Below, piece after piece: positions 31,197 to 38,013 of a DNA stretch of 64,000 bases. The stretch comes from Styela clava (Eukaryota): positions 6,696,001-6,760,000 of the forward strand of contig NC_135257.1 in the NCBI RefSeq assembly GCF_964204865.1. The letters run 5' to 3'. The translations under genes and the position numbers were made by a program. Positions within the stretch are counted from its first letter, which is position 1; each line of letters begins with the position of its first letter. The notes under the pieces were generated by a model. The model searched no databases. It had not been told where the DNA came from and saw nothing but the letters and a program-made list of their open reading frames with translations.

Positions 31197-31977
31197 ATGG
31201 CATCCAAGAAGAAAGTGAAACATCATGGAGGTTGTCATTGCGGAGCTGTCAAGTTTGAGGTTTATGCCTCTGAAGAATTATATGTTTATGACTGCAAGTA
31301 ATTTTCTCTTGTTTTTAGACATAGAACACATAGCCTACTTGAAATATTGTCACAGCATTTCGACGATTCATATATTATGTTATAATACCGCTTCAAGACA
31401 AATTTCTTTCATTCTTATGCAACAGTTAGGCCTTATGATCTGATGACATCAATATATATATTATTGACAGATATGCCATCTTTTAGAATCAATCCATAGG
31501 TTTTGTTAGAAGAGCGCAACAGACTAAGTCCTCATTGAACCATGTTATAGCATTGTCATTACTTTCTCTCAGTTGCAGCATTTGTGTAAAGAAACACAAT
31601 ATTCACTTCATTGTGCCGGAAAAGGACTTTGAGCTAATCCAAGGATCCGATGCTTTGACCACTTATACTTTCAACACAGGCATTGCCAAGCATATGTTCT
31701 GTAAAATTTGCGGGGTCCAGAGTTTTTATAGGCCTCGCTCTAACCCGGATGGATATGGTGAGTGAGATATCCAGATGATTAGAAAAGAATTTATTTTTCA
31801 TTTTTAACATTTGTATAATATGAAAATAAATTATATCATGCAGGCGTCAACCCAAACTCGTTAGATCACTCCACAGTGAAAAGTATAACAATTGAAAAAT
31901 ATGATGGCCAAAATTGGGAAGCTTCATTCGATGAACAACTGGAGAAGCCTGTACCAATACAATCCTGGTCAAAATAG
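31197..31977 (+). CDS. CENPV: Centromere protein V (GFA/Mss4-like Zn domain)
   Basis: Exons 31197-31297 (MASKKKVKHHGGCHCGAVKFEV...DCN), 31573-31757 (CSIC...YTFNTGIAKHMFCKICGVQSFYRPRSNPDGY) and 31844-31977 (GVNPNSLD...YDGQNWE...SK*). AATAAA at 32035. Confidence 0.92.
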
Positions 31978-32179
31978 CATCATCAGTACAAGCAATGCAT
32001 AATTGGAAAAATCATCGGTGCTTAATTACTAATCAATAAAGATGGTCCAAGAAATACCACATGGATCCATTGTGACCTGGAAATGCCAAGAGAATTATAC
32101 AAGGCAGTTGCAGCCAACTCACTTTCATAATTGATTAATTAATCGGGTTGCAGGCATACTACAATTAGGCGAATCAAGT

Positions 32180-34860
32180 TTATAATTTTGAGTATTCGAC
32201 ATCTGCTGGTGTTTTCTTTGCCATAAATGCTTGTGCTGATTTTGTAATATCTTCAGTCTGCAACATAGCTGCATTCCATGATGCCTGAACAGTGCAAAAA
32301 TAACCATACTTATCCAAGTACTGGTTTCGTAAGGAGTCCTAAAGGATCTACAGAATTTTCTCAATATATCGGGTTGATTTTTAAATAAAATTTCAATGTG
32401 TGCTAATGTTTCATCAATCCAGTGGTATTGTTGAATGATTCAAAAAGTTTGTCGAGATGAGTGCAGATTCCAAATTGAAACTTTTTTGCATCAGATTATC
32501 AAACATTGGCATGTGTAATCTCAAGGCACTTTGTTCATAATTATCATTATTCTGCAAAGGATAATTGGATATAACATTATTACATACCATATAATCCAGC
32601 CCCTCCTGTGTTGTGTGATCCCTTGAGTAATTCATATGTATTTTGGTGCTTTGGACCGCAACAGGACTCTTGGTTGCAATAAGAGAAGCTAATTCCATGG
32701 CCGCTTCCATCATAGAATCTTTATCATCATAAACTCGACTGAAAAATTCGCTTTAACTATCAATCCAGTGGAGCACCAGTAGCCCCAAAGATGATAACAG
32801 AGGCAGTAAGTCAGTAACTAAAACTTATAGCTAGAGGAGGAAAGCAGTAGTTACCTGACCAAACCTATCTGTTTGGCTTCATCTGCTTCTAGTTTTCTGG
32901 CAGTTAAACATAGTTCTCTTGCAACACTGTCATTACCAATTACTTTAGGCAGTCTTTGCAAAGTTCCAACATCAGGGGCCAAACCAACATCAATCTCCTG
33001 AAGTTGAAAAAAAAATATTATGACAAAAATGGAATCTCACTCCACCTGATTAAAGTCTCAACTTGCATTATAAGAGATTAGATTATGGTATTTCGCAGTG
33101 TTGTACATCAATACAGCCTATTTCAAGTTATTGCTGCAACAATCTATAGAATTTCTCATACTACATCAATCTGCTCATTGGATCGTTTTTTATTGGAATA
33201 TTAGCTATGCAGACTTCCTCAAAAGTCCCTGATTCAAGTTTACCCAACGCTATTATTCAGTTGTTATAAGCACCTGCTCAACTGATTTCAACTTATTCAA
33301 GCATCCTTGTTACACCTAGATCCAGCAGTACAAGGAACATTGGAATGAAGGATAGGTAGTTTGGTAAAACAATCCAATCATTCAGCTTTGGGGTGATTTC
33401 AAATCATATACATGCAATGTAAATTTAAAATGTTATATCATCACTTGTCCGTTTGTCAAATATTATGCGCTCCATATTGACTTTATGTTTTATGAAATTC
33501 TCAACATACTTTGGCTAAGTAATATGCATCTTTTGTTTGAAGTCTGATATCACATGCTGTTATTGCATCTACACCAACTCCGATACAACCATTGTGAACT
33601 GCAGCAATCACAGGCTTTTGGCACTTGAAATGAAAACATGCAAAATTATATCACTGCAGTAACGAATATACCTTAGCGCAGAAATAGGATTCGTTGGTGC
33701 AGAGTCTCACATCACAAGCTGTGATTAGATCCACTCCTCCACCCACACAACCACCATGGACAGACACCAGCACTGGTTTGCTGCACTGTATAATTGTGTT
33801 ATAAATTAAGAACTACTTTTGACCAAAAATGAAAGGATCTTTGTTTGGTATACAGATATAATGCAGTCTTGCAATTTACAGTAATAAGGGTTGCTAATGC
33901 CAACTTGCTATAGCCCTTTTTCATTGTACAAGTTAAGAATTGAAAATATGACCAAATTTTCATAACAGTTTTGTATAAGAACCAATTGCATTTTAGATCG
34001 AAAAATTAGACTTACTATTTTGCAATCAATATATTAGAATTTGAAACAATTTAAGACTCTTGTCAAAATTCTTTCTATGAAACTGATATCAGAAATAATA
34101 ATAACTAGTAGCCACCCACCCGTTCAATAGAATTGCAACTTTCTTGAGCGAACTTGATAAAACCATGTATTCGAAATGCATTCCTTGCAACGTCACTGTT
34201 TGGATCTGGGGCAAGTGATGATGCAGCAGCCATGAGGTCCAGACCTAAAGCAAGACAATTTCACTGTTACAAATGAGGAAGGAATGAAAAAACAATGAAA
34301 GACATATCACCAGCACCTGCTGTAAACATTCTCCCTTTTCCCGATACCACAATGGCTCTTACATTGGAGTCTTTGGCTGCAATATCAAAGCATGATATCA
34401 TATCACTCCACATTTGGTTGTTCATTGCATTCAACTTGTCAGGTCTGTAAAGAAACAAAAAGATTTTGGACTTAATTGCCCTTGATAAACTTTATCATTT
34501 ATATATAATCATTATAGACAAGCTTACCTGTTCAATTCCACATGAAGTACAAAGTCCTTTGGGGATGTTACAGCTAGTGTTTCAAACTTATAGTTGCCAA
34601 CATCCGCTACATTTGCAGACATCGGTCTGACAGCTAAACGTTTCATGGCTAAAAACAAAGAGTTGAGTGTAAGCCATATTTAAATTGACTATAGTATTCA
34701 TCATTCTTTTTAACTGCTCGATCTCCCATGATAATGGTTATTCATATTCATTCTCTAGGGTTCAGAAACGAAGTTTTTCATATGAATATATATATATCAC
34801 TATATTAAATTATGGCTTACCATTCATGGTCTGCGTCATTATTCGAGATGATGACAACAT
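32180..34860 (-). CDS. ECH1: Delta(3,5)-Delta(2,4)-dienoyl-CoA isomerase, predicted dual mitochondrial/peroxisomal
   Basis: Exons 34821-34860 (MLSSSRIMTQTMN), 34528-34648, 34317-34444 (RPDKLNAM...GRMFTAG), 34120-34244, [33672-33785 or 33510-33623], 32855-32997 (EIDVGLAPDVGTLQRLPKVIG), 32588-32738 (KSPVAVQSTK) and 32180-32284 (ASWNAAMLQTED...EYSKL*). Arg/Ser-rich N-terminus and C-terminal SKL. Confidence 0.95.
33510..33623 (-). CDS. ECH1: ECH1 duplicated exon 5B
   Basis: tttcaag|TGC...AAA|gtatgt, 114 nt, phase 0-0, CQKPVIAAVHNGCIGVGVDAITACDIRLQTKDAYYLAK. Confidence 0.88.
33672..33785 (-). CDS. ECH1: ECH1 duplicated exon 5A
   Basis: tatacag|TGC...AAG|gtatat, 114 nt, phase 0-0, CSKPVLVSVHGGCVGGGVDLITACDVRLCTNESYFCAK. 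Confidence 0.88.
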
Positions 34861-35237: not shown

Positions 35238-35531
35238 TTATTTATTTGCTTTGAATATAGTTTCATGGTGGGGCTCATCCTTATAATACTTGTTTCTCAA
35301 TGTTCTGTATTTTTTCAGCATATACAATGCTTCAAGCTCCTTTATGATGTAATCCCCATGTTTCAACAACTGTTTGATTTTTTCTGGATCTTGGACATCT
35401 TTGTTTTTCATGAATGCATTGTGGCATTTATCACGAAAGTATGTGGAACCGAGTGGATAATCCTTTCCCATAAATATAAGGTTTTTATAGAGCGTTTTCA
35501 CAGCATAACGAAGTTCCCTGGCTGATGACAT
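35238..35531 (-). CDS. ETFRF1: Electron transfer flavoprotein regulatory factor 1 (LYR motif protein 5)
   Basis: 97-aa single-exon ORF with LYK motif and the family signature [21 protein letters not shown]...[15 protein letters not shown]...[14 protein letters not shown]. Confidence 0.93.
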
Positions 35532-36864: not shown

Positions 36865-37395
36865 TCATTCCCTATGAACAAGAACAAACATTCCTAGTAA
36901 TGCTAACACTGCATATTTTAGTTTAGGATAATCATTCATCAATATAGTCACTATCCCGACATACGGGACAAAACCCCGTGCCCTTCCCACGACATCTTTC
37001 CGCTCAACCCACAGTTGGCCGGGCTTATATAGTCCTCTATCATCGACTGAATTGTTGTCACCTTTGGTGAGAAATTTTACTTTGCCATCCTCCCGCTCAT
37101 GCACCTTTATGGTTCTATGAACGATTGGGATGTCACGTCCCTCAATTTTAAAAACAACAATTTCGCCTGCGCGAATTGGGTCTTGTTGGTAATTAGTGAG
37201 AAATAGTAGATCTCCTCTGTAAAACGCTGGTTCCATACTGCCACTCAAAACAACAACAATTGGACTTTCGCTGCCAGTCACAACCATCATTCCCTTCCAT
37301 ATCATCAGCGCTGAAGACACAATCATTCCAAAATTCAAAACTTGAAAATACAGTTGTCTTTTGTTCAATCGTCGCATTTCATCGATGTACTCCAT
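36865..37395 (-). CDS. SEC11: Signal peptidase complex catalytic subunit SEC11, intronless CDS
   Basis: 176-aa uninterrupted ORF from the ATG at 37395: [25 protein letters not shown]...[14 protein letters not shown]...IPIVHR...TKGDNN..DDRGLY...VHRE*. Catalytic Ser/His/Asp motifs are present. Confidence 0.96.
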
Positions 37396-38013
37396 AGCGC
37401 TCGAACTTTGATATGTGAATCGATATGACAGACAGACAGAAAAACGACTGAACAAGCGGCTGACCAGGAATGAGAGGAACGGGAGCTCGACGTGTACTTT
37501 TGGCGCTTACCAGAAATTTTTCACATTGATATAAAATGTCAATATTTTTGTAGTTTTCTTTCAATAAGTAACACAAAATTCATAAAAAATTTATATTGTA
37601 TAATTTATTATTATATACAATGTAATTGTTCACTGTTTTGCACGACACGTTTATTCATTCAATGGGAGCGTTATTGCCATAATCTGGCATCGCATATCAT
37701 TTAAGCTTTATTTCCCATATTATAACGTCACAAATATTAAATCAGCTGTAGCGTGCTAGTTCTGTTTTCATTGTCCACTGGCGTCATGATGATTTTTACA
37801 TAAAAAAGTGTCCGCCAAGTTGATGTGCCGACGGCAAGGTGAGCTAGAACGCGCATTAGTGTTTTATATACTCGATTTTGGGGTATTTTATTTATTTTTG
37901 TTTCATTGCTCTTGTCTTTTTACCTTAATAAATAGTAATCAAAATAACGCCATCTAATTACAGAAAGACAATAGGCTACTCGAACATTCGCTCGTGAACT
38001 AAGAATTTGTATA

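Follow-up and report, generated by a model that had tools for sequence, protein, structure and literature searches.

The ECH1 locus of Styela clava and its duplicated exon

We analysed 64,000 nucleotides (nt) of the genome of the ascidian Styela clava (RefSeq assembly GCF_964204865.1, contig NC_135257.1, positions 6,696,001 to 6,760,000 of the forward strand), and this whole stretch is called the window below. On its minus strand lies a gene which, judged by its sequence and by structural models, is the single ECH1 of S. clava, coding for delta3,5-delta2,4-dienoyl-coenzyme A (CoA) isomerase, an enzyme of the crotonase fold. One exon of this gene is present as two neighbouring copies, exon A and exon B, and this pair is the subject of the present work (Table 1).

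In a profile search, the S. clava RefSeq protein matched the window exons at 100%, and the 90% cluster of the S. clava ECH1 protein consisted of two members, XP_039270794.1 (isoform X1) and XP_039270795.1 (isoform X2). Both isoforms have 308 amino acids and differ at residues 139-176 only, where X1 contains exon B and X2 contains exon A. Models of both alternatives are thus already part of the automatic NCBI annotation, and the pair is not new to databases. Window exons were searched singly, and all full-length work was done on the two RefSeq proteins, which match the exons at 100%. Pfam PF00378 is on record for the protein entry P0195. The AlphaFold model of X1 superimposed on the solved structure 1DCI with a template-modelling (TM) score of 0.97 (target-normalised) at 57% identity, and over 1DCI, 8SK6 and 2VRE together the expectation values (E) were 1e-35 to 1e-37, the TM scores 0.94-0.97 and the identities 56-57%; the next structural matches were hydratases at 24-33% identity. 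A C-terminal SKL and an N-terminal stretch of about 23 residues, which is of low confidence and unstructured in the models and compatible with a presequence, are common to both isoforms. At the 5' end, the RNA contigs described below had an ordinary ECH1 exon (e1) and no obvious spliced leader.

The first-pass annotation of this DNA, which was made from the letters alone, had described two intact 114-nt phase-0 exons with 23 of 38 residues identical, canonical splice sites and 48 nt between them, and we could confirm this description to the base. Each exon consists of 38 codons in phase 0-0, with AG directly before it and GTAT directly after it, and 72 of the 114 nucleotides are identical between the copies. 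The spacer begins with GT, ends with AG and has an in-frame TGA as its seventh codon. The other introns inferred in the window had been given there as 65 nt or longer, and the ECH1 introns seen in RNA contigs have at least 72 nt; apart from the introns that adjoin the pair, the remaining ECH1 introns measure 172, 83, 72, 116 and 303 nt, and the 48-nt spacer is the odd one out. The two acceptors are not equally strong, as pyrimidines make up 10 of the last 20 nt before exon A, which is poor, and 15 of 20 before exon B.

A six-frame search of the whole 377-megabase (Mb) assembly with exon A returned itself and exon B (E 1e-10) only, and beyond exon B the same search gave distant crotonases with E of 0.01 or worse. 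Exons A and B being the sole strong matches in the assembly, we conclude that the genome has a single ECH1 locus and that this exon is present in it exactly twice. When the exons were compared with solved structures, the dienoyl-CoA isomerases 1DCI, 2VRE and 8SK6 were the best matches of both (E 7e-14 for exon A and 1e-11 for exon B). A chance similarity of the two exons was considered as well and is ruled out by these structure matches and by the assembly-wide search.

Table 1 Features of the ECH1 locus and of neighbouring genes in the window
Feature	Position in window	Strand	Remarks
ECH1 coding region	32180-34860	-	Eight coding exons including A or B; protein C-terminus SKL
e1	34821-34860	-
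e2	34528-34648	-
e3	34317-34444	-
Constitutive exon e4	34120-34244	-	Ends ...SIER; donor joined to exon B in contigs
Intron upstream of exon A	33786-34119	-	334 nt
Exon A	33672-33785	-	HGGCVGGGVD form; in RefSeq isoform X2; among RNA contigs, in short ones only
Spacer between A and B	33624-33671	-	48 nt; must contain branch point and pyrimidine tract for the exon B acceptor
Exon B	33510-33623	-	HNGCIGVGVD form; in RefSeq isoform X1; in full-length spliced mRNA contigs
Constitutive exon e6	32855-32997	-	Begins EIDVGLAPDVG; acceptor taken by both the A donor and the B donor
e7	32588-32738	-
e8	32180-32284	-
LYR-like protein gene	35238-35531	-	Single open reading frame of 97 codons
SEC11-like signal peptidase gene	36865-37455	-	Single open reading frame of 196 codons; upstream of ECH1, same strand
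Small Cys-rich protein exons	31197-31765	+	Opposite strand to ECH1

Use of exons A and B in RNA contigs

To see which splice joints are present in RNA, we used public sequencing runs. In nine probable RNA runs of S. clava, 64-82% of the words sampled from the 286 nt over the pair were present, which is about the expectation for both exons without the spacer. Logan contigs of four runs from three studies were then aligned to positions 32100-34750. The run type "RNA" is a guess of the tool and the tissue is not stated, but the spliced contigs show that complementary DNA was sequenced. Such contigs drop rare variants, so they show the presence of a joint and cannot prove its absence.

The joints 34120>33623 and 33510>32997, which connect e4 to exon B and exon B to e6, were found in all four runs within long multi-exon contigs, so exon B is in the full mRNA. 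Exon B is thus the default form, and the form in full-length mRNA contigs is the divergent exon B and not the canonical-looking exon A. The joint 33672>32997, by which the exon A donor is connected to e6 and exon B is skipped, was found in three of the four runs, one per study; in these RNAs the A donor bypassed the exon B acceptor only 48 nt away and went 674 nt to the e6 acceptor. Two further joints were looked for in the contigs of the four runs and were not found, namely 33672>33623, by which A would be joined to B with removal of the spacer, and 34120>32997, by which both exons would be skipped. The spacer itself was covered by one unspliced contig only, in run X1. Routine splicing of A to B, which the first-pass annotation had named as an outcome that would speak against its proposal, was therefore not seen in any of the four runs, and A and B appear to be alternatives that are used one at a time.

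The contigs of three runs from three studies also contained a partly processed RNA (33671-34149, minus strand), in which the exon A donor is already joined to e6 and the 334-nt upstream intron is still present. This suggests that splicing begins with the downstream intron, or else that the upstream intron is a detained one.

Compared with the assembly, the four runs had about 22 single-nucleotide polymorphisms (SNPs) and several insertions or deletions in the 512-nt intron 32998-33509, and four SNPs and one insertion or deletion in the 334-nt intron 33786-34119, while the ECH1 exons had very few differences. This intron variation fits a highly polymorphic species.

Selection on the two copies and age of the duplication

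Codon positions of A and B were compared one by one, and 29 of 38 first positions, 30 of 38 second positions and 13 of 38 third positions were identical. The proportion of different synonymous sites (pS) was 0.71, which is saturated, that of nonsynonymous sites (pN) was 0.26, and the ratio of nonsynonymous to synonymous rates (dN/dS) was about 0.15 for both branches together. A copy drifting neutrally would not be expected to keep an open frame and the invariant residues after synonymous sites had become saturated, as both copies have done. No SNP was found in exon A or exon B in the four runs while adjacent introns had about 1-4% differences, a result that over 114 nt is only mildly significant. 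Both copies keep every column that is invariant or near-invariant among 305 homologous segments and in a 46-sequence alignment, and among those kept are the His and the Cys, the Asp and both outer glycines of the GxGVD loop, and the ACD.R strand. Four such columns are fixed by construction in the 305 segments, because the regular expression that cut them out requires them, but the full-length alignments are without that bias.

Two proteins derived from transcripts, P0206 and P0208, have 70% identity with S. clava ECH1, and their exon is identical to exon B at 31-32 of 38 residues and to exon A at 22-23 of 38. They have the unusual states of exon B, namely Gln for Cys at position 29 and Tyr for Phe at position 35, and they are also like B in having a small residue after the catalytic Asp and Ala or Val for the middle Gly. 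The tree built from the 38-residue segments placed B together with the exons of P0206 and P0208 (support 98/92) and A outside, and an approximately unbiased (AU) test rejected A and B as sisters (p 0.012). Because B groups with P0206 and P0208 and the AU test rejects A with B, the duplication seems, on these sequences, to be older than the split from the P0206/P0208 lineage, with exon A kept since then.

Other annotated proteins had a single version of the exon. The X1 and X2 isoforms of Ciona differ at one residue, which is outside this exon, and only one exon version was present in the annotated isoforms of Clavelina, Phallusia, amphioxus, Mytilus, Pecten, Crassostrea, Saccostrea and Patella. 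A search for A-type orthologues with X2 residues 137-178 gave 30 candidates, of which the best were from a plant and fishes and none from a tunicate; this search needs exact 5-residue words and similar protein length, so a blank means little. A metagenome scan with X2 gave crotonases at 46% identity only, plus one weaker match at 30%.

A second case of two copies of this exon was met in the course of the searches. In the genomic open reading frames P0001 and P0271, from ENA assemblies, the homologous ECH1 exon occurs twice in tandem within a single open frame, at a distance of about 100 codons. The 3' halves of the two copies are near-identical and the flanks upstream of them are similar, and oyster ECH1 is the closest sequence (33-34 of 38 residues). 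To judge from the sequence, the symmetric exon was apparently duplicated a second time, independently and more recently, in an animal that resembles a bivalve.

Active-site residues in the swapped segment

According to the alignment with 1DCI and 8SK6 and to the models, the swapped segment comprises a beta-strand (residues 143-147), the GxG loop and helix start (154-160) and two further strands. The first catalytic Asp, residue 157, is within it, and E177 and D185 lie in the next, shared exon e6. D157, E177 and D185 of the 308-residue protein are invariant in the 46-sequence alignment and present in both isoforms, and G153 and G155 are invariant too. We take the three acidic residues to be Asp176, Glu196 and Asp204 of the rat enzyme in the numbering of the 1DCI papers, with which the alignment offsets agree. 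The backbone NH of the middle glycine at the helix start presumably forms the second half of the oxyanion hole. The first-pass statement that this segment carries active-site residues thus stands for the middle glycine of GGGVD and the invariant Asp, which are present, while the oxyanion role belongs to the general background on the crotonase fold.

The isoforms had also been said to differ at the active site, HGG against HNG and GGG against GVG. As sequence this is correct, but the contrast is milder than was implied. Residue 154 is Gly in A and Val in B, and among the 305 homologous segments Gly has a share of 58%, Ala of 40% and Val of 1%; Asn for the first Gly of HGG is found in 30% of them. 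Each copy is unusual in its own places when compared with the family. Exon A has Leu-Val-Ser for Ile-Ala-Ala in the first strand and Asn-Glu-Ser for Lys-Asp-Ala, and in exon B the unusual places are the one beside the catalytic Asp and those of the changes Cys>Gln and Phe>Tyr. AlphaFold gave both isoforms the same secondary structure with high confidence across the swapped segment, the mean predicted local distance difference test (pLDDT) score per 10-residue block over residues 141-180 being 84-98 for A and 78-98 for B. As no invariant catalytic residue is lost in either isoform and the 15 differences lie around these residues, the two enzymes probably catalyse the same type of reaction with different kinetics or a different preference for acyl chains.

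Proposed mutual exclusion of the two exons and alternative explanations

We propose that the choice between A and B is made by a steric block. With a spacer of only 48 nt, the branch point of exon B would lie within about 30 nt of the exon A donor, so there would be no room for U1 at the A donor and U2 at the branch point of B at the same time, and the spacer could not be spliced out as an intron; reading the spacer by eye, we found the closest match to the branch consensus at an A that lies 26 nt away from the donor and 22 nt before the AG. A transcript would then commit either to B, with A lost within a 496-nt intron, or to A, with B lost within a 674-nt intron. Both exons have lengths divisible by three, which means that nonsense-mediated decay (NMD) cannot police the choice, and a steric block would be the likely enforcer. 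Since the A acceptor has a poor pyrimidine tract and the B acceptor is good, B would be the default and the intron upstream of A would linger, and exon A would need a tissue- or condition-specific factor.

The intron lengths of this species were compared with the spacer. ECH1 introns proven by RNA contigs have 72-512 nt. In S. clava myosin genes, 52 of 52 estimated introns had at least 71 nt with a sharp lower mode at 71-95 nt, these lengths being estimated from neighbouring exon matches to about +/-10 nt and coming in many cases from paralogues, which is not a genome-wide census. The 48-nt spacer is well below this lower edge of about 70 nt, which fits steric mutual exclusion. In human, a distance of less than 50 nt from donor to branch point is unspliceable, and 57 human clusters were classed in this way (PMC5740500); in Caenorhabditis elegans, introns of less than 40 nt are unspliceable (PMC4165533). 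The first-pass suggestion of the short spacer as a steric enforcer is credible in view of the estimated introns in the genome, which begin at about 70 nt.

Altogether, we consider it probable that an old tandem duplication of a symmetric 114-nt exon lies behind the pair, that both copies are coding and used as alternatives, and that they exclude each other sterically. Several observations weigh against this, and the looseness of the myosin intron estimates is one of them. The joint 34120>33785 (e4 to A) was not found in the contigs of the four runs. Every exon A contig continued 5' into the unspliced intron 33786-34119, in run X4 up to e4, and an exon A RNA that retains this intron would terminate four codons after e4. 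In word depth, exon A contigs were roughly equal to the ordinary intron contigs found in their runs, although by a caveat of the tool contig depth cannot rank parts of a gene, so that depth is a hint only. As the exon A contigs keep the upstream intron, a mature e4-A-e6 mRNA was not seen and is known here only as the automatic model RefSeq X2; contigs drop rare variants, so the absence of this mRNA from them is weak evidence. On the side of the sequences, the segment tree has 38 columns only and its branch to A is long (0.54, that of B being 0.12), one rare residue is common to both copies (Ala at position 37), and no A-type exon was found in the proteins and transcripts of any relative that was searched, the genomes of the relatives not being read.

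The first-pass proposal was thus borne out in part. For mutually exclusive use, B was found without A in all four runs, the A donor passed over B in three of four and no A-B joint was seen, but a mature A mRNA was not. Among the junctions that it had listed, 34120>33623, 33510>32997 and 33672>32997 were found in RNA contigs and 34120>33785 was not. The comparison of the copies and of relatives gave a dN/dS of about 0.15 and a B-type exon in two related transcripts, but no A-type exon in relatives.

The alternative that survives best is that exon A no longer adds to the protein, being a decoy, an unproductive splice or a relic, and that RefSeq X2 is without biological weight. The strong A donor would capture some transcripts while the weak acceptor stays unused, and the RNAs that keep the intron would meet a stop and be degraded. 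All A contigs keeping the intron 33786-34119, the absence of 34120>33785 in four runs and a depth like that of intron contigs are what it would lead one to expect, and so are the pyrimidine tract of 10/20 against 15/20 for B, the long branch, and rare residues at conserved positions, namely a Ser (position 8) and a Glu in a place that is Asp in 96% of homologues. However, synonymous sites are saturated and yet the 38-codon frame is open, the invariant residues are kept and dN/dS is about 0.15; there is no SNP in 114 nt while neighbouring introns vary, and in the tree the duplication precedes a split between proteins of about 70% identity. We therefore hold an unproductive exon A to be unlikely.

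Somewhat more unlikely still, in our judgement, is that the exclusion is real but set by RNA structures, splice-site strength or trans-acting factors, with the 48 nt being incidental. The acceptor strengths differ clearly, and a stem of 12 of 14 base pairs (bp) between 33702-33689 and 33667-33654 would enclose the A donor, placing it in a 21-nt loop. But this stem was not better than chance, with a minimum free energy (MFE) of -13.7 kcal/mol, a z of -1.18 and 28 of 200 shuffles folding as well, and when docking or selector structures were looked for across the 1.1 kilobases (kb) of 32998-34119, the other inverted repeats were short and imperfect and the B donor region had a z of +0.33. The spacer is moreover well below every intron length measured or estimated in the genome, and the A donor goes 674 nt to e6 and not to the otherwise favoured B acceptor 48 nt away.

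If both exons were included in one mRNA, the 38-residue segment would stand twice in tandem in the protein. This would keep the frame as both lengths are divisible by three, but it is almost certainly wrong, because there is no A-B contig, full-length contigs run from e4 directly to B in four of four runs, the spacer has an in-frame stop, both RefSeq proteins have 308 residues with one copy each, and a repeated strand-loop-helix would break the crotonase fold predicted for the single-exon isoforms. Constitutive use of both exons is likewise ruled out by the RNA contigs and the one-copy RefSeq proteins.

Neighbouring genes and other loci

The genes next to ECH1 in the window are listed in Table 1. 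The Cys-rich protein on the plus strand looks to us like a member of the GFA/CENP-V family, which we assume from its appearance as no search was made. Two other kinds of loci were noticed elsewhere in the assembly. At C16:12.61-12.71 Mb at least seven copies of a myosin-head gene lie in a cluster, and many of their introns have about 71-95 nt; at C6:13082844-13084853 a myosin head is encoded in one intronless open frame of 1032 codons. Distant crotonase paralogues are at C8:21332508, C9:18682991, C1:30452205 and C3:1189220; they have uninterrupted frames of 290-755 codons and are apparently intronless, unlike ECH1.

Relation to known systems and meaning of the exon pair

Tandem exon duplication with mutually exclusive use through a too-short intron is a well-known, textbook kind of event. 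Exons 2 and 3 of mammalian alpha-tropomyosin are a pair whose mutual exclusion is sterically enforced. The S. clava pair is like this class in having equal-length neighbouring homologous exons of a length divisible by three and an intron that is too short, so that double inclusion would be blocked physically and not by NMD. Sterically enforced pairs are also known in C. elegans, where they are 5A/5B of egl-15 and 9/10 of let-2 (PMC4165533). In the steric class the failure of the short intron was tested experimentally, whereas for ECH1 it would follow from how short the spacer is, from the lower limit of intron length as estimated for the genome and from the joint not being found in contigs.

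Two other enzymes of fatty-acid metabolism can be compared with ECH1. According to PMC3791418, vertebrate ACOX1 is a peroxisomal enzyme of fatty-acid beta-oxidation in which one gene uses the homologous exons 3a and 3b alternatively; its isoforms have been characterised biochemically, and Oaxaca-Castillo et al. 2007, as cited there, speaks of substrate specificity. ECH1 is similar in that one gene uses one of two homologous exons in fatty-acid beta-oxidation. ACOX1, however, is a flavin oxidase of vertebrates whose isoforms are known from biochemistry, whereas S. clava ECH1 is a crotonase whose isoforms are known here from sequence. In ACSL6 and ACSL1, mutually exclusive Phe-gate and Tyr-gate exons swap a short conserved motif at the substrate channel (PMC1543647). 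There, as in ECH1, other conserved residues are spared, and position 35 of the ECH1 exon is also Phe in one copy and Tyr in the other. Unlike ECH1, ACSL6/ACSL1 are acyl-CoA synthetases, the exon pair is conserved across vertebrates, and forms that lack both exons occur, while no ECH1 contig skips both. With the rat and human ECH1 structures (1DCI, 2VRE and 8SK6), the S. clava protein has in common the fold, the three acidic residues, the N-terminal extension and the C-terminal SKL.

A survey of human tandem-exon substitutions does not mention ECH1, which belongs to the auxiliary beta-oxidation of unsaturated fatty acids, and a literature search on mutually exclusive exons of ECH1 or of S. clava and on tandem exon duplication in dienoyl-CoA isomerases found nothing relevant. 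The first-pass remark that such exons in ECH1 were not known to it therefore holds for the papers searched, but not for databases, where X1 and X2 were already in RefSeq.

From the sequences we tentatively suggest, as one possible reading that we would not yet rely on, that S. clava has two isomerases with different kinetics or a different handling of acyl chains, and that a hard-wired steric switch selects between them. As parts of the same tentative reading, the B lineage would have acquired four changes near the catalytic Asp, shared with a relative at 70% identity (middle Gly to Ala or Val, a small residue after the Asp, Cys to Gln and Phe to Tyr), and exon A would be ancestral at these four sites and used only in particular tissues or conditions.

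As the mechanism is textbook and the isoforms are already in RefSeq, the value of the finding is moderate. Nevertheless, where mutually exclusive exons exchange part of an enzyme's active site, nature has in effect run an experiment in enzyme tuning, and this compact pair of two exons and a 48-nt spacer is a convenient chordate system in which the steric model could be tested. The pair could also show the effect of Gly or Val at the middle position of GGG on a crotonase. If the suggestion of two tuned isomerases is true, the independent duplication in an oyster-like animal would make this exon a recurrent evolutionary hot spot for tuning ECH1.

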